A DNA stretch of 64,000 bases from Neoconidiobolus thromboides FSU 785 (GCA_025603075.1 MU626369.1:9360-73359); one strand, 5' to 3'. Numbered from the stretch's first letter, positions 14,329-34,967 are shown. Translations and numbers: made by a program. Notes: generated from the letters alone by a model not told the origin.

Positions 14329-15120
14329 ATGAACTTGAATAATATAATGTTTAATAATTCCAAAGAGAATCAAGAAAAAAAATTCAAGCCCTTTGGAATG
14401 GAATCCTTTATAGGCCACATTCAAACTGTTAAAGATGCATTACTGCTCTTTGAGGCTGTAAGAAGTAACAACCTAAAGTGCATTGAAAGGAGGCTAAACG
14501 TAGCTGAAAGAAATAACATAAAGTCTGGTGCAACGTTCATATTCGATGAACAACAGTCTGGGTTACAAAGATGGACAGATGGGTATTCGTGGTCAACGTC
14601 AAGAGTAAAAGGCCACTTCTTAGTATATGAACAAAAGAACCAAATGGACCCCTTATTTAAAAAAACAATATCGGTTGTCACAAGAGATAATAAAAAGTAT
14701 TGCTTAGTCAATTATTATTATGGTAGAGATCTAGATAGTAATTGCTTAGTTACTCCAAAAGATTTACAAAGGTTTCAATCATACTCAATTCCAGCTGGAT
14801 TTTATTTCAAGTTCTCCTCTTCTTTAAAAGATGGTGCAAAGTCTTTTAAATTAACTCCATTAAGTGCAAATGATGATAGTGATGTATATACAAAAGAAGC
14901 TATTAAGCGTCCTAATCCTTTTGATTTACTTTTTAACCACGATAATATGACAACAACTTCTTCAATATCTACATTGCATCACTTCCCTAGCACCTCAGTA
15001 CCCCAAATCAACTATGAGAATACTTACCATGATACAAATACTTATAAGTCATACCCTACTTCTAGTTCTATGAAGTTACCAGGTATACAGTCATTACTTT
15101 TACGTGGTGATTATAATTAA
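14329..15120 (+). CDS. Gti1/Pac2 (WOPR) family transcription factor
   Basis: MESFIGHI.T..DALLLFEA, RRLNVAER..IKSGATFIFDE, RWTDGYSWSTSR...FLVY, LFKKTISV, LVNYY motifs. Confidence 0.93.
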   Translation: MNLNNIMFNNSKENQEKKFKPFGMESFIGHIQTVKDALLLFEAVRSNNLKCIERRLNVAERNNIKSGATFIFDEQQSGLQRWTDGYSWSTSRVKGHFLVYEQKNQMDPLFKKTISVVTRDNKKYCLVNYYYGRDLDSNCLVTPKDLQRFQSYSIPAGFYFKFSSSLKDGAKSFKLTPLSANDDSDVYTKEAIKRPNPFDLLFNHDNMTTTSSISTLHHFPSTSVPQINYENTYHDTNTYKSYPTSSSMKLPGIQSLLLRGDYN

Positions 15121-16959: not shown

Positions 16960-18555
16960 TTATTTTACAGTAATTTTACAGCCTTCCCTAAAAGGTATAT
17001 GTTTCACAAATAATGATGAAATAAATGTAAAGCTAGCAAATAAAATAAGCAACAAATATGAATATTTTATACCCTGAAGGTAGCTTTCTTGTACTAACAC
17101 TATTTGATTGGGAGTTAAACTAGATATTCCGTTTGAAGATGATATTATAGTGATAGGGTTTACATTAGGCAGCTTTTCTGCTAAAGTTGATATTAAAACT
17201 GTAGAGAAAATTGATCCTTGAATAGCTAAACCAAGGATTGAACCTAAAGGGAAAGAAAGGCCAATTACAGCAGTGATGATTGCAACATCTTTTTCCTCTA
17301 CAGCACATTGACAAATAATCAGACTATTTATTGCACATATTCCAACCCCCAATCCAATAAGTAAAGTATAAATAATTTCCTCAGCTCTGGTAATATCTAA
17401 TCGTAAAAGGGTACCAAACAAAGTGACTCCTAAGAGTGTTGAAAAAGAGCCAACCATAGACATTATCCTATAGCTTTTTGTCTTGGTAATAAAAATTCCA
17501 GTGAACATTGCTCCAAAAACAGTCCCTAAAAGAAAGGGAAGGATTTCAATACCAGAATAAAGTGTTGATTTTCCTTTAACTACTTGATAATATAAAGGAA
17601 TATAATATACCGTTACTAAAGAACTAAATCCGTTAAAAAAATCCACAAGGTTAGCACATATTGTATTTCTATTTAGGATATGAACAGGAATAATTGGTTC
17701 CTTAACAAATTTTAACTCAATGATACCAAAAAAAATGTACATCAGTATTCCAATGACAATAGTAGAAAGCACAGGTGCTGAACTCCAAGTATATTCTTTA
17801 CCAGCCCAATTAAGCCCTAGAATAATACAGATATTAGCCCCAATTAAAGTTAAACTGCCCAAATAATCTATACGTAGTAACTTATTGCTTAAGTTTTCTT
17901 TTTTTGATGGTACCTTTAAAGATACAATAAACACTACCATTGTTACAATACAAATTGGTACATTTATATAAAAAGCCCAACGCCAAGATAAGCCATCACT
18001 AAATGAACCACCAATTAAAGGTGCAACTATAGAAGCTAAACCATAAGCAGTAGAAATTGCACTCATATAAAGACCACGAGTTTTTATAGGAACTATATCT
18101 GAAAGTATAATAGCTGAAATTGCTATTAAACCACCGCCACCAATACCACAAATAGCACGAAAGATAATAAAAAGGATAATATTTTGGGTAGTACCACACG
18201 CGATAGTACCAATCAGAAAAAAGGTCAAAGAGAATAAGATCGAAGGCTTTCTACCAAAAATATCAGATAGTCTTCCATATAGTGGTAGCATTGCTGTTGA
18301 AGTTAAAGAGTATGCTACCCCTACCCAAGTAATAAGATTTAACCCCCCAAGCTCATTAAGGATGGGTCCGAACGCTGTGGATACCATAATATTGTCTAAT
18401 ACAGGGATCAAATTTGATAGAATCAAGCCTAAAATTATTATTCTTAGCCTCCACTTACTTATTTTGAACTCATCACCTATATAACTATCTTCACATCTTT
18501 GATCTAATTGATATTTTGAATCAGGCTCATCGTTTGAAAAAATACCATCATTCAT
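16960..18555 (-). CDS. MFS drug:H+ antiporter, DHA2 (14-TMS) family
   Basis: LDNIMVSTA, YGRLSDIFGRK, FRAICGIGGGG, WRWAFYINVP, IDYLG motifs. First ATG is at 18555; the ORF track starts at an upstream TTG. Confidence 0.93.
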   Translation of the reverse strand: MNDGIFSNDEPDSKYQLDQRCEDSYIGDEFKISKWRLRIIILGLILSNLIPVLDNIMVSTAFGPILNELGGLNLITWVGVAYSLTSTAMLPLYGRLSDIFGRKPSILFSLTFFLIGTIACGTTQNIILFIIFRAICGIGGGGLIAISAIILSDIVPIKTRGLYMSAISTAYGLASIVAPLIGGSFSDGLSWRWAFYINVPICIVTMVVFIVSLKVPSKKENLSNKLLRIDYLGSLTLIGANICIILGLNWAGKEYTWSSAPVLSTIVIGILMYIFFGIIELKFVKEPIIPVHILNRNTICANLVDFFNGFSSLVTVYYIPLYYQVVKGKSTLYSGIEILPFLLGTVFGAMFTGIFITKTKSYRIMSMVGSFSTLLGVTLFGTLLRLDITRAEEIIYTLLIGLGVGICAINSLIICQCAVEEKDVAIITAVIGLSFPLGSILGLAIQGSIFSTVLISTLAEKLPNVNPITIISSSNGISSLTPNQIVLVQESYLQGIKYSYLLLILFASFTFISSLFVKHIPFREGCKITVK

Positions 18556-19501
18556 TATGTAATTCCGCGAGCGTTGCTGCCTTTTTGTTTTATAGATTTG
18601 AATCGGTACAATAATCGAATACTTTTGTGAAATCAACTGTTAGTAGAGCTATAAGATGTTCCAGATTTATATACTTAGTTGTTTAGAAGTATTATTAATT
18701 CTAGGTATATTTATAGATTTAAATTAAAAGAATGCTTTTTTATTTTTTTCTAGTCGAAATATGTTTTTTTTTCTTAGTTTGGATTATCTTATTGTTTATT
18801 ACTGTATTGTATTTATACCTTTAAAACAGATGACTTGGGTCCTGGTCCTAAAGGAACATGTCTAAAGTTTGCCTATTAAAGACCAATGTACTAAATTTAC
18901 CTCAAGTTTTTTTTACACAATATGGCTTGGCATGAATTCTTCAAGATTTAAAAATACTAAGAATAATTCATAACTTTTAGTTATACAACTTAATTACTTA
19001 AAGTATCCTTTAACTATATCAGTTTTTTAAGTCAGTCAATAAATATACAGGGATTGTAAAGAGCAACAGGTTATATTTTTATCCTAATAAAATGTTTTCC
19101 TTTTTTTCAATATGCTATTTTTTTGATATTATAGAAAGAAGAACTTAAACAAAATAAAAACAATTTTTATCTAAAATCTACTTAACAAATAAATACCTTA
19201 GATTGTGGTAAGGTTACCTCATTTAGCTAGTAATTATATAAATAATAGAAGAGCATTTTTAAATCTACACATTTTGTTTACCCTGCTCTTTACATTTATA
19301 ATTTTTAAATATAATAAGTCAAGCATAGAATTTTCACTCCGATTTTAACAAATTAAAATTCAGTTCTACAAATACAAGTGAATAAACAATAATATTATAT
19401 TTATATAGATGAGGGTAGAATAGTCCACATTTGAATAATTATCAAACAAGCGTATTTATTTAAAAATGTAACTAGTTTTGATTTTAATTTTATAATCATA
19501 T

Positions 19502-21106
19502 TTAACTTACAGTAATATTAGAGCCTTTTCTAAAAGGAATATGTTTCACAAACAAGGAAAATACAAATGCTAAAACTTGAAAACCAATCAAAGAGTAATA
19601 TAAATATTTAAATGCTTGGATGTATGCTTGGCTGACTATGATGGACTGCTCTGAAGTTAGTTTTCTCAACTCTTCAGCATTTGAAATAATCATATTGGTA
19701 TTAATAGCAGGCAAATTTTTAGATAAATTGTTTAGTAAAATATTTGAAAATACGGATCCTTGGACAGCTAGTCCTAAAACCGACCCTAAAGATTGTGTAA
19801 AATTAACCAGTGCAGTGACAATTGCAACATCTTTCTCTTCAACTGCACATTGGCATATGATGGTATTAGTTTGTACACATAAACCAAGTCCAACGCCAAT
19901 GATAAGAGTAAACAAAATTTCCTCTACTCGAGTAATATCCGTCCTTAATAAAGTTCCAAATAAAATGACACCGACCAAAACTAAAGTAGTACCAACAATA
20001 GGTAGGACTCTATAGCTACCTGTCTTTGATGCAAAAATACCAGAAAAAATTGAAGCAAATATAACCCCCAACAGAAAAGGTAATAACTCTAATCCAGCAT
20101 ATATAGCGGAGCTCCCTTTAATAATCTGATAATATAGCGGTATGTAGTATAAGGACACCATCAATGTAAACCCATTAAAAAAAGTGACAAGGTTAGCACT
20201 TATAGTATTTCGATTTAATACATAACCAGGCACTATAGGCTCAATGGCATACCTAATTTCTACTATTATAAAAATAGCAAACATTATGACAGCTATTATA
20301 ATAGTAAATACGACCCGAAAAGAATCCCAACTGTAATCTTTGCCACCCCAATTTAATGCCAAAACTAAGCATGTGTTTGCTATAATTAAGGAAGAAGCCC
20401 CTAAATAATCAATCCTTTGAAACTTTTTCAAGAAATTTTCGTTTGTTTTAGGCAATTTTAAGAAAAACAGTATGATAGCAATAGTTATCACACAAATTGG
20501 AATATTAATATAAAATGCCCAACGCCAAGATAATCCTTCACTAAAAGCACCCCCAATTAAAGGGCCAACGACAGAGGCAAGAGCAAATATAGCCCCTACA
20601 ATACCCATATAGATGCCTCTTGTTTGCATAGGTGCCATATCTGAGATAATGATAATAGCAATTGAGATTAATCCACCCCCACCAATTCCAGCAATGGCAC
20701 GAAATACAATTAAGATGATAATGTTTTGGGCTACCCCACAGACTATGGAGCCAATTAAAAACGAAATCAATGCAAATAAAATGGTTGGTTTACGTCCAAA
20801 AATATCTGAGAATTTACCATATAGTGGCTGTAAAACAGTGCTTGTTAAGAGATAAGACGCAGCCACCCAAGTGATTTGATCCAAACTATTAAATTCGGAT
20901 GTTATTATTGTTAGTGAAGTGGAGACCACTGTATTGTCCAAGGCTGCTATAAACAGAGTAAGAGATAGCCCAAGCATGATTATGATCATTTGAGAGCGTG
21001 TTATCTTCTGTTTGCTTAAATCAATACCCACTATATCTCTCTCTTCCTCATTTTCTTTAACTATGGTTTTGTTATTATTTGCTTCAACGTCATCTAGATT
21101 TTTCAT
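19502..21106 (-). CDS. MFS drug:H+ antiporter, DHA2 family (tandem paralog)
   Basis: LDNTVVSTS, YGKFSDIFGRK, WRWAFYINIP motifs; colinear with the neighbouring MFS gene. Confidence 0.95.
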   Translation of the reverse strand: MKNLDDVEANNNKTIVKENEEERDIVGIDLSKQKITRSQMIIIMLGLSLTLFIAALDNTVVSTSLTIITSEFNSLDQITWVAASYLLTSTVLQPLYGKFSDIFGRKPTILFALISFLIGSIVCGVAQNIIILIVFRAIAGIGGGGLISIAIIIISDMAPMQTRGIYMGIVGAIFALASVVGPLIGGAFSEGLSWRWAFYINIPICVITIAIILFFLKLPKTNENFLKKFQRIDYLGASSLIIANTCLVLALNWGGKDYSWDSFRVVFTIIIAVIMFAIFIIVEIRYAIEPIVPGYVLNRNTISANLVTFFNGFTLMVSLYYIPLYYQIIKGSSAIYAGLELLPFLLGVIFASIFSGIFASKTGSYRVLPIVGTTLVLVGVILFGTLLRTDITRVEEILFTLIIGVGLGLCVQTNTIICQCAVEEKDVAIVTALVNFTQSLGSVLGLAVQGSVFSNILLNNLSKNLPAINTNMIISNAEELRKLTSEQSIIVSQAYIQAFKYLYYSLIGFQVLAFVFSLFVKHIPFRKGSNITVS

Positions 21107-22079: not shown

Positions 22080-23188
22080 ACATACTCTTATTTAAATTTA
22101 ATAATAATAAAACACTGCTTAATTTGAGAAAAAAGCTTGAAAAACAAATACAAGCTATTTAAATAAAATAGGTTACTACTTTTTATAATCTAATTTTTTT
22201 TTGAAATTTTTTTAACTATAACATTTAAATAAATCAAAAAGCAATTTATACTTCGATTTCGCAGTCTTTATAGCTAAGATTTGCCCAAAAACAAATAAAC
22301 ATGAGGATGTCTAATGGTGCATTTTTATATAAAAAACATTCGTATATATCACTTAAAATGGACTACTTATTCCAATGTATATTTTCTAAGTATAATGTAA
22401 AATCCTGAAGCAGATGATAATTTTGATACAAATAAAATAAGCCTTCATAAAACAGAAAATAGCTTTCAAAACACATTCTAACTTGCATCAAAACTCAAAC
22501 AGTTTATTTTAAAATATTTTTACTTAAAATGATGGTATAGCTATATGGTGCATAAACAGCATAATTTCAAAAAGTAGACTAACAATCAGGCAACTTTTTG
22601 TTTAAAAATTTTTACGCGGACCAAACCTTCAGCCAATCATATCCAAAATTATTAACCAATGAAAATTTTTCATTTAAGCTCTTTTTAAAAAGTATAAAAT
22701 CAAATCTAAGGTGATTACAAATTTTATCTTTATACTATCTCAAAAGTAAGTTTTAATTTCACGTTTTTAAAATAAGACTGTGATGCATAACACACCTTTA
22801 TCAACTAGCATAGGCAATGATGTTGTTAAGTTAACCATCTTTCGGGACTGATGATTTATATTATAAATTCTATCATTTTATGAATTTTATACTAATTATA
22901 TTATTTTAGATCTATAAATCAGCATATATTACATATTAATAAAACTATCTAAGCTTCTAACATCATTTTATCTCTTTTACATTATAATTTACAATTTAAA
23001 TAATCTGCATTTTATACCCATATAGAAAAGCTTATAGTTAAACATTTTTTGGAAAATACTAGACCAAAGGCTAGTACCAACTTTATTAGTTATATTAAGA
23101 TAGAATAAAGTAAAACAAAACAATAATTAAAATTAACACTCACAAAATTCAACTATTGTAACAATTCAAAGTAATTATCTCTAGTGTA

Positions 23189-24124
23189 CTAAACAGTAAC
23201 CTCTACCTCAACTGGATAATGATCCGATACCTTAAGCGCAAATTCTTTATCCAATTTAAAAGCATCATCAAACCTGTACGCTTTAGCATTAGAAAAGAGC
23301 CCCTTTTGACTGGTTGGGACGATGATTCTATCCAATGCACAATGGTTATCATTGACGGTAGTGTCATGATCATTTTCAATAAGCCAATGGAACTGTTCTC
23401 CATTAAATAAGGCTAACTGACCCAATCTCTTTTTGCTAATAAAGCTGGAGCCTGCGTTTAAGTCGCCTAATAAAATAGGGCCAATAACAGTATGGTTCAC
23501 TTGCCCTTCTTCCATTGCAATGTCGCCCTGTTGTTGATGGCTATTTGTCATGCTGGGACACAAGCATGAAAATATAAAGTTTAATACCTTCTTAAACAAG
23601 CCTTCTTCTTGTTTAGATGGTGATGAGTTATCGCGGGGCTTTGGTTGTATACTCAGTTGTTCAAAAGGGGCTACCAAAGCATCCAATTCATTTTGTACCT
23701 CACTTGGCTTGACATGGATGCCTAATAATAAGATGCTTTTAAACATATCCTTTTTTAGCTGGAGTCGTAAGATAAATGGATCCCTTTCAAATAGGTCTTG
23801 GGTATCTATAAACACTTCGCTTTGTAGTAAAGTGAATAGATCTTTTTTGTACAAGTAAATATACTTCTCTTTGTGCACATTGCGACCCAAATTGACGCTG
23901 ATGCTACCCTCGTATTTATTTTTTAAAAGTTCAAGTAATAGAGCTAAGATTTTACTACCATCCATGCTCTTGGCATCTGACTCTCTTACCTCTTGTAAGA
24001 AAATAACATCATAGCGGTTTAAAATTTCTATTATGATGTCTCTTATCTGCTTATCGTCAACTAGCTTTTTAATACTAAATGATCTTATATTAAATGATGC
24101 TATTACTACTTTGTTGTTTCTCAT
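23189..24124 (-). CDS. Deoxyribonuclease I-like endonuclease (EEP fold), no N-terminal signal peptide
   Basis: ASFNIR, LQEVR, LGRNVHKEKY, FERDP, GIHVKP, GDLNA, DTT, CALDRI and SDHYPVEV follow animal DNase I motif order and spacing. Confidence 0.92.
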   Translation of the reverse strand: MRNNKVVIASFNIRSFSIKKLVDDKQIRDIIIEILNRYDVIFLQEVRESDAKSMDGSKILALLLELLKNKYEGSISVNLGRNVHKEKYIYLYKKDLFTLLQSEVFIDTQDLFERDPFILRLQLKKDMFKSILLLGIHVKPSEVQNELDALVAPFEQLSIQPKPRDNSSPSKQEEGLFKKVLNFIFSCLCPSMTNSHQQQGDIAMEEGQVNHTVIGPILLGDLNAGSSFISKKRLGQLALFNGEQFHWLIENDHDTTVNDNHCALDRIIVPTSQKGLFSNAKAYRFDDAFKLDKEFALKVSDHYPVEVEVTV

Positions 24125-24304
24125 AATTTTTATTAAACCCTAAATTCGTTATTTCTTTTAATTTTTTTTATAAACCAATAAAATAAATTGAGGATCAATT
24201 TTTTCTATCACACTTCAATTAACCAAAATAAGGCAAACAAGATTATAAAAATAGTATATAAACAAAATTTTGGTATTATTTTATTGTTTTATATTGTAAT
24301 TGCT

Positions 24305-24529
24305 ATGAAATTCATATTGTTTTTATTCTTTGTAACTTATAATTTATCCTTACCATCCAATAATCATCCAACCCACAGCAATAACATTGAAATGCTATAT
24401 CGAATAACAGGAACTGAACCAGTATATGAAAGCATACAAGGAGATAATGATATAGCCAATGAGCTAGATGTAGTAGATGTTTATGATTATTACGTCCATG
24501 ATGAGCCACAATATAAGTTTGTAAACTAG
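24305..24529 (+). CDS. Putative small secreted protein (74 aa)
   Basis: MKFILFLFFVTYNLSLP signal-like start followed by an acidic, Tyr-rich tail; no recognised homology. Confidence 0.5.
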   Translation: MKFILFLFFVTYNLSLPSNNHPTHSNNIEMLYRITGTEPVYESIQGDNDIANELDVVDVYDYYVHDEPQYKFVN

Positions 24530-24615
24530 TACATTTTAATAAAACTTAATCTCTTTAAACTATTTTATAAATGTTTATTATATTAATTTAAAAACCCTAT
24601 CAATCAATTAGCATA

Positions 24616-27600
24616 CTAACTTAAATTCCTCAACGACCAAAGTATATGGAATGGCCTTACTGGTGCTGACAGATTAAGATCAAGTGCATATACCATACAA
24701 GAATTTGCTTTCTTAAGCAATTTCGATTCCCTATGGGTCCTACCTAATAAAAACCTACACAAATTAAAACAAACATATAACTGAAAATAAATTAGTAAAT
24801 ACCATCCTAATGCTGATGACCAGCCTGGGCCATCAGTAACGGATCTTAAACAAGATTCTGCCATATCTAACTTATTTAACTCAAGGTAGCATTGTCCTAA
24901 ATAAGTCAATGCTTCCGTATGAGCTGCATCCAAAATCGTAGCTCGATTCAGGCATGTAATTGCATTCTCATACTGTTTTTGAGCTAAAAAGATTTTACCA
25001 TACTAATCATAAATTAATGTTATAAAAGTAAACTAAAATGAAGTTACTTGGCTCCAAATATCAGCTGAAGAAGGATCAATGGATTCTGCTTCTTCACAAG
25101 CAAGTTTAGCATCCTTATATCTTCCTAATTTATAATATGCTTGGGAAGAATGGAGCCACAATGAAACCAAAACCTGGACCCCTCTTTTTCTACGTGATAA
25201 AAGGCGTGGCAAAGAGCGCGTAGAAATATGCATTGAATAGGGTGAAGAAAGCGATGCTAAAGTAGAACTAGCATATCCTCTAGACTGACCAGAATATGGG
25301 CCTTTGGTCCCAGATTGTATAGTACCTATAATAATAAATCAAATCGCCTTCAATAATAAGAGACTTACCATATTCTTTAGATGAATAATTGCCAGCGATA
25401 GAAGCTGGTCTCTGTGCTGAATTCAATTCCTGTACTCTAGATCTAGGAAAGGTAGAATTATTCAATTTAGATCCAGACAAAGATTCATCGAAGTTTTTAT
25501 TTTTAGACATTTGATTCCCTTCTTTTGCTTCTGAAGAACCGTATACCTTAGCATACAGCGTAAACAAGGAACCGTGGTGATTTATAGCAATTTTTGTGCC
25601 TAAAGCTGCTTCCTGCAAACAATTGTAAGTTAATTTCAATGACAATAAATCCTCGCCATCTAAATTGGTTGTTAATAAACCAAGCAACTCTTCCCCTTCT
25701 TGCTCCGTATCTTCTTTTTCTGGGTCTACCTCTCTTTCAGCTTCTCTCATAGCCACTTCGCAGATGCTTAAAGCCTGATCAAACTGTTTCTGACAACTCA
25801 TCAACAGCACTAATAGGTGCCAAGCTGGCGTGTAGCTCGAATAAAGTTCCAAACTTTGTTTTACAGATTGTATAGCCTCTTCAATAGCTCTTCCTTCGGC
25901 TTGTTGTAAGCCTAAGAAAAAGTGAGCCTCCCAATTATCTGAATCCATCTTTATTGCTTTTTCTAACGCGGATAAAGATTGGATATGGAATTGGGTACGT
26001 GTAGCGTGATTATCAGCTAAATAATTTCGTTAGCTTATTATTTAATTCGTTTCGACTATTTTTCTACCTTTCATACTGAGGTATCCCTTTGCTACTCCCA
26101 AATGCTGATAGGCACGTGATAAAAGAGCAAGGTGATGATTGGGTCTCGTTTCACAATGTTCGATAGCCATTTCTGCTAACTTGATCGCCAACTCATAATC
26201 ATCAAACTCTTGAATATGTAACTTTGCTGAGATCAAATAAGTTTCAATAACCTGGGCTAAGAGTTCTTTATCCTCTGGTGGTAAAGATCTTCGAAACTCT
26301 AACTCAGCAGAATCTAAAGTAAACTCAGAAAAGGAATCTTTTTCTTGTGTTGGTCCCAAGATACAGCTTTCTTTGACCTCGATTGATTTTTCTACAAGTT
26401 GAACATACGAGTCTAAAGCTAATTTAGCCTCTTCATATTCTCCTAAGGCTATTAAAGCAGTGGCTAAATGCCTTAACACACGTGGTGATTGATAAGTGAA
26501 TTTTGCTACTCTATATAAGCTATCAACTAAGTTCTGGGTATCAATCGCTCTGCTATTTTTCATTAAGCTCCAATTCATCATCATCTGATCTGCCATATCT
26601 AAAGCATAAGGATTAATAGATCCAGCAGTTGGGAACGATGATAGTTGGTATATATAGCCTTCATAACGCGTTTGAACGTTGCTTAACTCATCCCTGAATG
26701 CAGCTGGGGTATAAACACTCATTAAAGAGTTGGGGCTAAAAGATTAGAAATGAGATTAGAAATAAAAAGTCAATTACCCTTCTGGCGGGTTGGCGGTATA
26801 GCTTGAATAGCATGGGATGTGCTCACCACGTTGGTAGGTTTGAGTGAGCACTAATATATAATATCTGAGTAACAAACGTTGACGATGCGGGCGGAAGATT
26901 TTATTCCAACCATTGCTTTCAGAAAAATAAAACCTAAACACATTGATTGCCGTTTGGTACTCTCTATGTTAAATATTAATTAATGATATATTGTTAAAAT
27001 TGTTTCTTACTCTAATCTCAATGCAATCAAAGAGTGACGATAAAACACGTTTTCAATTGTTTTTTGGAACTCGGGTTTAATCTTATCAGACAAATCTCCA
27101 GAATAATTTTTTAGGATAGTTAATCCTTTTTGATAATATTCAGATGCTTCCTTAAACTCATTTTTTAACTCAAAGCACATAGCTAACAAAATTAATCTTT
27201 AACTCCATAGTAACAGTAAATCATTACCCATGATATTCAAAGCTTGGATATAAAGTACGCAATGATAGCCTTCTAACGAAACATCTCCACTTAACGATAG
27301 CTCTTGAAGAACTTTTTCTGCCTCGCTATATTCTCCACATCCAAAATAAGCTTTTGATTTTATTATATTTGCTTGCTGAACATTAAATATTAGTTTTTTT
27401 TATTATGAATCAAAATATTTGGATACTTCAATTATACTTTTGCTTTTTTCTATATCAGTTGATAGCTGACTGCAGCTTCTGATCGCAATATCTGCATTAT
27501 CGATTATCAGATTAATAGCGTTCATCGTAGTACTATCCTTTGGTATCAATATATGATTTGGATGATCCAACGCATGCTTTGATGGATCAAAATCGTCTGT

Positions 27601-27833
27601 TACCTGGTATAGAGAATGCTCAGAGAGGATCAAGTGTTGTAAAGCTTTTTTGAATGTAAACGTTAGCTTTAATTGTTTTGATTCTTATGTTTTGAGTATG
27701 TTTAATTAAAAGTACCTGCTCCTTGACTCTCATGCTTTTTGTACTTTCTTGCTAGTTCTGGCAGTTCTGCCCAAGAGCCTAATAACCTGGTTCTTTCTAT
27801 ATCTTTTTCTAGTGACTTGGCGCGACTTGACAT
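24616..27833 (-). CDS. YPP1: TPR protein, Ypp1/TTC7-like (PI4K adaptor), multi-intron
   Basis: ATG at 27833 (MSSRAKSLEKDIERTRLLGSWAELPELARKY). TPR-like exons include YTPAWHLLVLLMSCQKQF and HTEALTYLGQCY, and the C-terminus reads APVRPF. Confidence 0.75.
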
Positions 27834-28288
27834 GATAAAATAATATTGTGGCTCAAAGTTCGATGTGTTAAGTAGGGTTATATTATTGGATAGAAAATAG
27901 TTGGAATTAATTGGGTTAAGTCAAATGGTGTTGACTAGTTATTTTTGCAGAAATTATAGTAATTTCATTACTGTTTTGCTATCTTTTGTGAAATAGAATA
28001 GGCTGGTGACATTTAGTTCTTGTTATACTTAAAAGGCTTTAGTAATTTTTTGATATTATAGGTAAAGACCAAATTGAAAGGGAGTATTCCCCAGAATTAT
28101 GTAAACAAAAAAACGCCTACATAAAACACTACCACTGATAAAATTAAGAAGTCGAATTTAAAATTTTAACTTTAAGCTTATAACTGTAGACTCATAGATA
28201 AACCAAAAAACTAAACATAAGAAACAAAATAATAACACTTGAAAATTACACTACTTTATATAGAAAAAACAAAATAATTTCAATTGTA

Positions 28289-31446: not shown

Positions 31447-33210
31447 TCAAATGATAACAGTAGCAAAATCAACCGTATAACCTTCAGAATCCTTTCGAAT
31501 TTCCTTCGACTTAAACTCCACTTTAACTGTCCAATTTCCTTTGTGGGGATGATAAATCTCGAAAGTATTATGATAATAGAACTGATATCTACTATTATGG
31601 TACCATGAAACAGTAAGAGTTTCTCCAGGTATTCTAGAAGAATACTCACGCAATTCACCAAGCCTAAGCGTTGATAAATACAAAATTTTATTCTTATATT
31701 CTAAAGAATCGATAAGAGATATCCGTTTGAGGAACTGTAACCACATACCTTCTTTACAAACATTGCAGAATGAAGAACTGGTCATATTTCTCATAAGACA
31801 TCTGGCATTTGTAGGGCGATAGGTTTTTCTGCGATCAACATCCCATGTAGGGTAAGCAGAATAGTTATTGTTATCTTCATTAAAATTCTTCTCAGTACCA
31901 AATTCATGAAGTACAATATTAGCAATCATACGAGGTATATTTTTATTAGTAGAGTTGGTTTTGCTTCTTATGGTTACTGTATGATTTCCAGCTAAAAACC
32001 CACGATTATCCTTCCATTCATAAAATTCTCGATCATCTGAACCAGTTGTTTTCCATGGAAGTATTTTTCCATCTAGAGTAAACTCTAAACAGTCTTCTTC
32101 ACCAGCTGCAGTAACAGAAGCCAACATATACCAACGTGAATATTTTCCATCCGATGTAAAGTTAAGCGTAACGGACCCTTTACTCAAGTCTCTCCATGGA
32201 TAAGCTAACAACCGGTACATTACTTTTTCTTCACGAACTGGACCATTAATCCAATGCTTCCACCCAATATTTTGAATATTTTGAGCCGCATTAACACCAT
32301 CATAAACCCATCCATTATCATATTCTTCTCCAACATCAACAAAATTATGCCCCATTTCATGTCTTAAAACGACAGTACCAGTTCTTGCAGATTTAGTAGA
32401 AATAACAAACTCACCACCAAGGCCGCCATAAAAATCGTCGTTAGCAATGATACTTGGATAATCACAAGCCTTATCACCGGTCAACTTGCATATTTCTCTA
32501 GCAAATCCTGCATTCATTGGAATAATACCACGCAGCTGCCCTGCTTCCCTTGTTAATTGAAATGCTGTATCTTTAGGCCCATCATACCCGATCCCAGACT
32601 CCTTACTATCTACATGGATCGCCCAGATATTGAACAATGGCAGCCAAGATTTAAATGTCACTCCTTCAAACATTTCTTTTGTAAGGCGCTGAATATCATT
32701 AAAAAACAGCTCTTTTTGCTTTGAAGTGTAGCCATCTCCCATAAAGACTACATCAATACGGTTTTTCGGATCACCATTATCAATGATTTTACGTACTTCG
32801 GGTCCCAAAGTACTTATTGAGAATGAGAATGGGTAGGCTTTTACTTTAGTTCGCTTTTTGCAAAGAGTAACTACATAGTTGTTAAGCACGCGTTTGTTCT
32901 TAGCATAGAGCTCTACTATAACTGATTTGTCAGTAAGTTTCATATTTGAACAAGAATCGGCCATTGCTAGCGACGTTATCATTTTTATTTCTTTTGAATC
33001 CCCAGGTTTTAACCCTTTATAGGTAATATCCTCTGCTTCAGTGATTATTGTACACCCCTTCCTTACATCTTGGTCATTATGTAATTTAATATAATGGACT
33101 TTTGTAGACCTAATTTTTATTAAATATTAAATAATTAAGTTCAATAATACTTACAAAATGGAAGCTATTGCTGATAATAATAACAATAAATTAGTAGTAG
33201 TAGATTTCAT
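31447..33210 (-). CDS. Secreted peptidase family M64 (IgA peptidase-like); 1 intron (33110-33154)
   Basis: NRIDVVFMGDGYT, YGGLGG and VLRHEMGHNF zinc motif, plus C-terminal CLMR..FCNVC. A signal-peptide exon (MKSTTTNLLLLLSAIASIL) splices in frame upstream of the tracked ORF. Confidence 0.9.
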
Positions 33211-34124: not shown

Positions 34125-34967
34125 TTAATTAAAAAAAGAATTAATAGCTTTAAGTTGCCTTTGATCTTCAGTGGAATAAGACCTTTCGTTATTTAATGTA
34201 GGAGTTGTGGTTGGTATGGGAGGTAAGATAGGGAGTTGACTATTATGGATAGAATTGGAAGGTGGGGAAAAAGAATGTTGAGATAATAAATTATAGTTCA
34301 AAAATGAATTATAGATTGTTGGCTCAATCATTTGTGAATTGTGATGGGGATTATATGAAGTTAAATATGAGGAAGGGCTCATTTTGGTTTGTAGATTGCT
34401 ATCTAAAGTAGATGCCTTTGAATAGGATGCTATGGAATTGAGACTATTATTAAAGGCAGGCTCATCAGTGGTAGTATCATCAAGCGGCGTTAATAAATAA
34501 TTATTTCCATTAATTAAACTTGTGTGAGTAACTTTGCGAAAATAATAATTTTTTGGGAGAATAATATTGTTTAAGTAGGTATCTTTGGATGGGTTTTTTA
34601 AATTATTATTGTCAATATCGGCATTGGTATAATAAGAGATAAGCCCAAATCTTTTATCATCTCTAGTCACAATTGTTATGGCTTTTTTTATCAATTCGTT
34701 ATTAATATATTTAGCATTCTTTTGAGTGTAAGTTAAAAAATGACCATTAAACCTTGAAGCTGACCATCGCATACCATCCGTCCACCTCTTTAATCCTGGA
34801 TTGGATGCGTTAAATACAAATATTGAACCTGATCTTATGCTTAACCTTTCTTCTGAAGTCAATCGGCGTTGAATTAAAGGTATTAAGCCTAAGCGGGTAG
34901 CTTCAATTAACTTTAAAGCATCACTTATGTTTTTAATATAACCAAAATACGATTCCATACTAAACAA
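34125..34967 (-). CDS. Gti1/Pac2 (WOPR) family transcription factor, second paralog
   Basis: MESYFGYI...DALKLIEA, RRLTSEER..IRSGSIFVF, RWTDGMRWSASR, LIKKAITI, LISYY motifs. Confidence 0.93.
   Translation of the reverse strand: MFSMESYFGYIKNISDALKLIEATRLGLIPLIQRRLTSEERLSIRSGSIFVFNASNPGLKRWTDGMRWSASRFNGHFLTYTQKNAKYINNELIKKAITIVTRDDKRFGLISYYTNADIDNNNLKNPSKDTYLNNIILPKNYYFRKVTHTSLINGNNYLLTPLDDTTTDEPAFNNSLNSIASYSKASTLDSNLQTKMSPSSYLTSYNPHHNSQMIEPTIYNSFLNYNLLSQHSFSPPSNSIHNSQLPILPPIPTTTPTLNNERSYSTEDQRQLKAINSFFN

Follow-up and report, generated by a model that had tools for sequence, protein, structure and literature searches.

DNase I is the textbook secreted enzyme of animals, and model fungi are without it. 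Among its relatives, DNase1L3 (DNase gamma) is the member to which actin insensitivity and roles inside the cell and on chromatin are attributed, and DNase1L1, a vertebrate paralogue of DNase I, is held at the membrane by a GPI anchor. For fungi, a 2022 study describes DNase1 as absent "with the exception of glomeromycetes" and favors vertical transmission with losses for this gene (PMC9208542). Beyond that study, our literature search found nothing on a characterized fungal DNase I or on the "DNase I-like" protein of Rhizophagus, and neither a description of DNase I in Zoopagomycota nor one of the subfamily signature presented below was found. The glomeromycete DNase1 is already published, and what appears to be new from the sequences compared here are the Zoopagomycota members and a derived architecture shared by the fungal proteins, for which no earlier description was found.

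The window analyzed here is a stretch of 64,000 nt from Neoconidiobolus thromboides FSU 785 (GCA_025603075.1 MU626369.1:9360-73359), and it carries a DNase I-family gene at 23189..24124. The original prediction had called this frame DNase I-type; the frame is real, and its coding strand is the minus strand. The CDS is a single intact exon that starts with ATG and encodes 311 amino acids plus a stop codon, within an open frame of 316 codons. In the AT-rich genome of 24.6 Mb (approximately 26% GC), the gene is present as a single copy, no paralogue was found, and its base composition is similar to that of its surroundings. The window could be recognized as fungal by its short introns, by two Gti1/Pac2 (WOPR) genes lying within 20 kb of each other (14329-15120, plus strand, and 34125-34967, minus strand; Pfam E 1e-33 and 9e-32), and by a tandem pair of TRI12-like MFS transporters, or pumps (16960-18636 and 19502-21106, minus strand; Pfam MFS_1 E 7e-46 and 7e-54). 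It also contains a 511-aa Peptidase_M64 (IgA-peptidase-like) ORF (31447-32982, minus strand; E 9e-24) and, next to the DNase gene, a TPR-repeat gene (24603-27900, minus strand) with at least ten confirmed GT..AG introns of 42-71 nt.

Transcription of the locus was assessed in public data. The DNase locus was present in four public runs, which represent RNA because they skip ten 42-71 nt GT..AG introns in the neighboring TPR gene. In run X3, whose contigs were identical to the window sequence, one colinear contig of 1066 nt covered 23045..24110 (minus strand), that is, approximately 144 nt of 3' UTR and all of the CDS but its first 14 nt. The alignment was free of mismatches, gaps, and joints. 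Since this contig is colinear with the genome, the DNase gene is transcribed and intron-free, and the insert described below lies within the mRNA. A second strain or allele differed from the window gene at 5 coding nucleotides, all of which (5/5) were synonymous. In the TPR gene, a second contig set (organism A) showed joints shifted by 2-6 nt (24996/25002, 26016/26018, and 27180/27182), some additional letters, and numerous linked differences at third positions; the set resembles a second allele or strain rather than alternative splicing.

Family membership was examined with profiles, solved structures, and a structural model. The protein scored 31.7 bits against Pfam PF03372, above the cut-off of 24.5, and the solved structures matched by its sequence were DNase I-family proteins only, with DNase1L3 (7kiu, E 3e-34) as the best match, followed by bovine DNase I (1dnk, E 5e-33). 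Both matches fell into two blocks, residues 6-156 and 217-308, leaving approximately 60 middle residues without a counterpart. The AlphaFold2 model, built with 94 homologues, had a mean pLDDT of 89.8, with only residues ~160-211 dropping to 50-70. The top 10 Foldseek matches of this model were all DNase I or DNase1L3 (E 1e-22 to 4e-26), and the next EEP families (CCR4, EEPD1, and TDP2) reached only E ~1e-11. Compared with bovine and human DNase I (DNASE1; 1dnk, 2a42, and 4awn), the fold was the same, with TM-scores of 0.86-0.90 on the target. It is solidly established that this fungal genome encodes a true DNase I-family enzyme.

The active site was then compared residue by residue, with bovine numbers mapped through a rodent DNase I row that reproduces the known bovine positions. 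All 9 catalytic and metal residues were identical to those of bovine and human DNase I (N7=N12, E39=E45, E78=E86, H134=H137, D168=D221, N170=N223, D212=D265, D251=D301, and H252=H302), as were the 3 DNA-contact arginines (R9=R14, R41=R47, and R111=R114). This mapping confirmed the original prediction that the equivalents of R9, E39, R41, E78, R111, H134, D168, N170, D212, and H252 are intact. Among the Ca-site residues, D99, D107, D201, and T203 were kept and E112 was replaced by Asp. Ca2+/Mg2+-dependent endonuclease activity on double-stranded DNA is predicted from these residues; the core would act as in bovine DNase I, with His137 and His302 as the acid/base pair and with Glu45, Asp221, Asn223, and Asp265 holding the metal and the phosphate. 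However, the 3 DNA-contact tyrosines were all changed (Y76 to His84, Y175 to Phe228, and Y211 to Leu264), of which the original prediction had correctly recorded the first, whereas Y175F and Y211L had escaped it. His at position 76 is common to several orthologues. With all three tyrosines replaced, one of them by a change (Y211L) that no other fungal row in the comparison shows, the enzyme may be less active or act differently. The actin contacts of DNase I also differ, with Y65, V67, and E69 replaced by G, I, and V.

The features that accompany secretion in the bovine and human enzymes, namely the signal peptide and the disulfides C101-C104 and C173-C209, are missing from the window protein. 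The C173 equivalent is Ser226 (motif GDLNAGSS), as had been noticed at first reading, and C209 is kept as the unpaired C262; the C101/C104 loop is deleted, so that the second disulfide is also lost. The protein has only 3 cysteines, C187, C189, and C262. In agreement with the initial observation that it begins directly at the first beta strand, strand 1 occupies residues 5-16 of the model, within the confidently modeled core, and the protein starts 4 residues before it. DNase1L3 has a signal peptide, a disulfide, and a basic C-terminal tail, whereas the window protein stops right after the last strand.

Another difference from bovine and human DNase I is an insert: the helix after H134 and the strand of D168 are separated by some 50 additional residues. 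In the window protein, it extends over approximately aa 157-211 (23492..23656, minus strand), between the post-His137 helix and the Asp221/Asn223 strand, and it contains FKKVLNFIFSCLC. The distance from H134 to the GD motif is 83 residues, compared with 30-35 residues in ~190 homologues. The insert is left unaligned by bovine DNase I and has low model confidence (pLDDT 50-70). A Cys-containing amphipathic insert of ~45 aa had been proposed at the outset; it is real coding sequence, with a length nearer 50 aa. Its only predicted helix is amphipathic and spans aa 174-186 (EGLFKKVLNFIFS; 23567..23605, minus strand; 174-185 in the model), with a hydrophobic moment of 0.59, the second highest in the protein. 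This helix is directly followed by the cysteine pair C187-L-C189 (23558..23566, minus strand), a candidate S-acylation site and the local form of the cysteine string of the fungal proteins. No membrane-spanning segment was detected, the maximum Kyte-Doolittle value over 19-residue windows being 1.09. Since strand 212-221 ends at Asp221 and the preceding helices start at His137, the insert would exit the sandwich opposite the active site, and by the same strand topology it would emerge approximately 30 Å away from it. A possible unspliced intron inside the insert was rejected: a 35-nt GT...AG intron within the FKKVLNFIFSCLC region would disrupt the reading frame, the RNA contig runs across the insert without interruption, and the orthologues can be aligned to the insert at every residue.

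To place the protein among its relatives, a word search and profile searches were performed. In the word search, Massospora cicadina (44% identity), Entomophthora muscae (41%), and Conidiobolus coronatus (38%) ranked above all single-domain animal proteins. The proteins of these three fungi share the insert with an invariant F-S-C-x-C motif, and position C173 is not Cys in any of them. Of the three entries, that of Massospora is incomplete, that of Entomophthora has a long, probably misannotated N-terminal extension, and the Conidiobolus coronatus orthologue begins at strand 1 and is encoded by a single 1068-nt exon. When 1.84 billion representatives were searched exhaustively with a profile, 2380 matches were obtained, of which the best 150 were examined, and a second search was run with a fungal profile. 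Insert-bearing proteins were named from Piptocephalis cylindrospora (Zoopagomycotina), from unnamed metagenome sequences, and from Glomeromycotina of four orders, with 12-13 genera (Rhizophagus, Glomus, Funneliformis, Entrophospora, Gigaspora, Cetraspora, Racocetra, Scutellospora, Acaulospora, Ambispora, Paraglomus, and Geosiphon). No protein from Dikarya, Mucoromycotina, or chytrids was named among the matches listed. The nearest non-fungal matches listed were invertebrate and vertebrate DNase1, and identity to animal proteins was ~30-35%. Among the best 150 of the 2380 profile matches and the word-search matches, enlarged H134-GDxN spacing (60-116) was confined to a small set, and the insert was carried by fungal proteins only.

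The same searches returned several unusual architectures. P0002 and P0059-P0067 have 2-3 tandem DNase I domains (Owenia fusiformis, Seison nebaliae, and the EukProt transcriptome Hpha) and come from several invertebrates and protists; such proteins head the profile searches because their domain scores add up. The homologue P0163 contains approximately 17 tandem copies of a 16-residue unit with the GDLNA active-site motif, which could be an assembly or gene-model artifact or an odd exon amplification.

Across the fungal homologues, the insert is found at the same site and has a common order. In 34 fungal sequences, a charged stretch is followed by a hydrophobic or aromatic amphipathic stretch, a Cys cluster, and a Ser/Thr/acidic linker that leads into the conserved IGP-x-x-x-GDLN strand. 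The C173 equivalent was Cys in none of the 34 proteins (0/34). A hydrophobic stretch with 2-10 Cys was kept in about 30 of them, although the number and spacing of the cysteines are not fixed: Entomophthorales have a CxC cluster, Glomeromycotina have CC, CCC, or CCCC, and a single insert can contain as many as 10 Cys. Examples of the strings are FCCCLP, YCCCCFG, and FSCLCP. The IFSCLC motif of the window protein lines up with LFSC[IL]C in Entomophthorales and the CC/CCC/CCCC strings in Glomeromycotina, and C187 is nearly invariant in the fungal alignment. The exceptions are the clade member P0071, whose insert has no Cys, and a few glomeromycete paralogues with 0-1 Cys. The Glomeromycotina proteins additionally have an N-terminal extension of 140-225 aa, which is charged (20-29% Lys/Arg), Ser/Thr-rich, and equipped with NLS-like basic clusters, and which the window protein does not have; the fungal orthologues begin either at strand 1 or with this extension.

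Two further variations were seen within this group. P0079 (Piptocephalis) and the metagenomic relative P0094 have a second insertion of ~150-250 aa, rich in Lys/Ser/Thr, between helix 2 and strand 3. In Gigasporaceae, 2-3 fungal DNase I paralogues are present per species (P0221/P0091/P0239, P0232/P0241, P0226/P0242, and P0233/P0238); one paralogue group has a much shorter insert with the motif LLWSYLCCCL, and one member has no cysteines.

The absence of the signal peptide and of all the disulfide cysteines throughout the clade, the charged extensions of the glomeromycete members, and the position of the insert opposite the active site together suggest a cytoplasmic enzyme that an amphipathic helix and S-acylated cysteines hold at a membrane. 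With a probability of roughly 0.6, we favor a non-secreted, Ca/Mg-dependent endonuclease of DNase I type that belongs to a fungus-specific subfamily inherited from early fungi and whose insert serves for tethering or switching at a membrane. In this subfamily, the signal peptide and both disulfides of the secreted enzyme would have been dropped and the insert gained. Through reversible S-acylation of the cysteines, combined with insertion of the helix, the nuclease would be attached to a membrane on the cytoplasmic side, its active site pointing away from that membrane, and this attachment would keep the enzyme off nuclear DNA until its release. We infer the intracellular location, the lipid anchoring, and this logic of sequestration from the features described above. 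The original prediction had also read the protein as intracellular and possibly S-acylated, and the conservation of the insert in some 30 fungal homologues makes that reading more credible.

A membrane-held DNase would have a parallel in DNase1L1, as both proteins would be lipid-held if the insert is acylated. However, DNase1L1 is attached to the outer face through a C-terminal GPI signal after secretion, whereas the proposed fungal anchor would be an internal S-acylated loop on the cytoplasmic side, and the two proteins fall in different clades of the tree described below. For the cysteine string itself, phospholipid scramblase 1 offers a precedent, in which palmitoylation of a CCCPCC string determines whether the protein stays at the membrane or enters the nucleus (PMC9158361). 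Strings of a similar kind occur in the fungal DNase inserts; the scramblase belongs to an unrelated family, and the likeness would extend to the mechanism only, by analogy.

The main competing explanation, which we consider possible but doubtful, is that the Cys cluster is a regulatory or interaction loop and that the enzyme is a soluble cytoplasmic or nuclear DNase. Such a loop could be a redox switch, a metal-bridged dimer contact, an inhibitor docking site, or an autoinhibitory element. It would be consistent with the low model confidence of the insert and the charged, disordered sequence that flanks it, with the NLS-like basic clusters of the glomeromycete members, which suggest a nuclear destination, and with the few or missing cysteines of some members. 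S-acylation is, moreover, predicted unreliably from sequence. However, the cysteines vary in number and spacing (2 to 10) and occur in contiguous runs, so S-acylation fits better than a defined metal site. They also always follow immediately on an amphipathic stretch of hydrophobic or aromatic residues, an arrangement known from acylated strings, and the window protein follows this pattern, with helix 174-186 preceding C187 and C189. According to topology and the model, the insert is far from the active site, and direct autoinhibition is therefore unlikely.

A more far-reaching proposal, which we regard as unlikely, is that the protein is a parked self-destruct nuclease: the palmitoylated insert would hold it on a cytoplasmic membrane, and de-acylation would free it into nuclei, where chromatin would be degraded. 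Nuclear entry would occur by diffusion in the case of the 36-kDa entomophthoralean form and via the NLS-like clusters in Glomeromycotina. If this were true, coenocytic early-diverging fungi could dispose of single nuclei or entire hyphal compartments, for example when ageing, forming spores, reacting to incompatibility, or defending themselves against intracellular DNA, and the enzyme would correspond to the apoptotic DNases of animals, with acylation as its switch.

A further competing explanation is that the protein is a conventional secreted DNase and that a signal-peptide exon upstream was overlooked. The original prediction had left room for such an exon by pointing to a possible TTTAG acceptor 15 nt upstream. 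The TTTAG is present and followed by 15 nt of open frame before the ATG; its TAG (24140..24142, minus strand) is an in-frame stop as well as the AG of the putative acceptor. No splice joint or loose end was seen at 24139 in the four RNA runs, and no RNA coverage was found over 24167-24223 in runs X1, X2, and X3. Transcribed sequence is next found at 24224-24548, where a small ORF runs divergently on the plus strand, and no ATG-led hydrophobic ORF was found on the minus strand upstream of the TAG. The RNA check of the 5' end that had been suggested at the outset thus showed no upstream exon, although the contig ends before the ATG. Among the relatives, the Conidiobolus orthologue with its single 1068-nt exon, Piptocephalis, and two metagenomic lineages begin at strand 1, and counting those with a charged extension, five independent orthologues begin in one of these two ways; the disulfides typical of secreted enzymes are lost too. 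A missed signal exon is, on this evidence, very improbable.

The small divergent ORF (24305-24529, plus strand) and the DNase gene are arranged head-to-head, with ~180 nt separating the ORF from the DNase ATG. The ORF was covered by RNA contigs in runs X1 and X2 and showed two T>C differences (24460 and 24478) in the second strain. One contig links it to the 3' end of the TPR gene, indicating that their transcripts overlap.

To examine the origin of the gene, a maximum-likelihood tree of 55 rows was calculated, with the insert columns removed by the gap filter. The tree was left unrooted because putative prokaryotic and metagenomic sequences fell inside its poorly resolved non-fungal part. A branch with 97/98 support separated ten fungal rows from the other rows, showing the monophyly of the fungal DNase I clade, and the window protein adjoined Massospora and Conidiobolus. 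In this unrooted tree, the fungal clade stood apart from collembolan, mollusc, rotifer, sponge, and vertebrate sequences and was not nested in arthropods or vertebrates. The glomeromycete DNase1 of PMC9208542 falls in the same fungal clade as the window protein; Zoopagomycota, the insert, the cysteine string, the lost disulfides, and the missing signal peptide are not named in the available part of that text.

The gene is common to Zoopagomycota and Glomeromycotina and was therefore, most simply, present before their split and, judging from the matches listed, later lost in Dikarya and others. This distribution fits an old fungal lineage with later losses, including those in model fungi, as was already proposed for glomeromycete DNase1 in PMC9208542, and it agrees with the ancestral relic that the original prediction had named as one of two origins. 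The other was horizontal acquisition. A transfer from an animal, for instance from an insect host of entomophthoralean fungi, would be in keeping with DNase I being mainly an animal family that model fungi lack, with the nearest non-fungal matches listed being invertebrate and vertebrate DNase1, and with the absence of synteny in the 10 kb that flank the Conidiobolus coronatus locus on each side, a comparison that is, for lack of synteny, uninformative on origin either way. However, orthologues with the same derived features occur in three fungal subphyla, Entomophthoromycotina, Zoopagomycotina, and Glomeromycotina, the last of these plant-symbiotic and represented by four orders, and they form one clade (97/98) apart from the animal sequences. 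Together with the identity of only ~30-35% to animal proteins, the base composition shared with the surroundings, and the vertical descent with losses favored in PMC9208542, these findings make acquisition from an animal most improbable, and a recent transfer from an insect was rejected on the distribution and the tree. The original prediction had itself stated that widespread fungal orthologues sharing these features would refute it, and such orthologues were found. A single very old transfer into early fungi would, in an unrooted tree of these sequences, look the same as descent from the opisthokont ancestor. Just as improbable is a catalytically weakened or repurposed DNase I fold (for example, a DNA-binding or phosphatase-like protein in place of an endonuclease), for which the three replaced DNA-contact tyrosines, with Y211L unique among the fungal rows compared, and the modest Pfam score of 31.7 bits could be cited, but against which stand the intact nine catalytic and metal residues and three arginines, the exclusively synonymous differences between strains, and the His at position 76 in several orthologues.

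Taken together, a whole fungal branch has been rebuilt alike, without secretion signal or disulfides and with a conserved cysteine-string insert. Insect pathogens, mycoparasites, and arbuscular mycorrhizal fungi are all represented in this branch. As a short, expressed gene without introns, the window gene is a convenient member to clone. The shared architecture gives a concrete hypothesis, that of an intracellular, lipid-regulated DNase in multinucleate fungi, which would bear on nuclear turnover or the handling of foreign DNA in early fungi.
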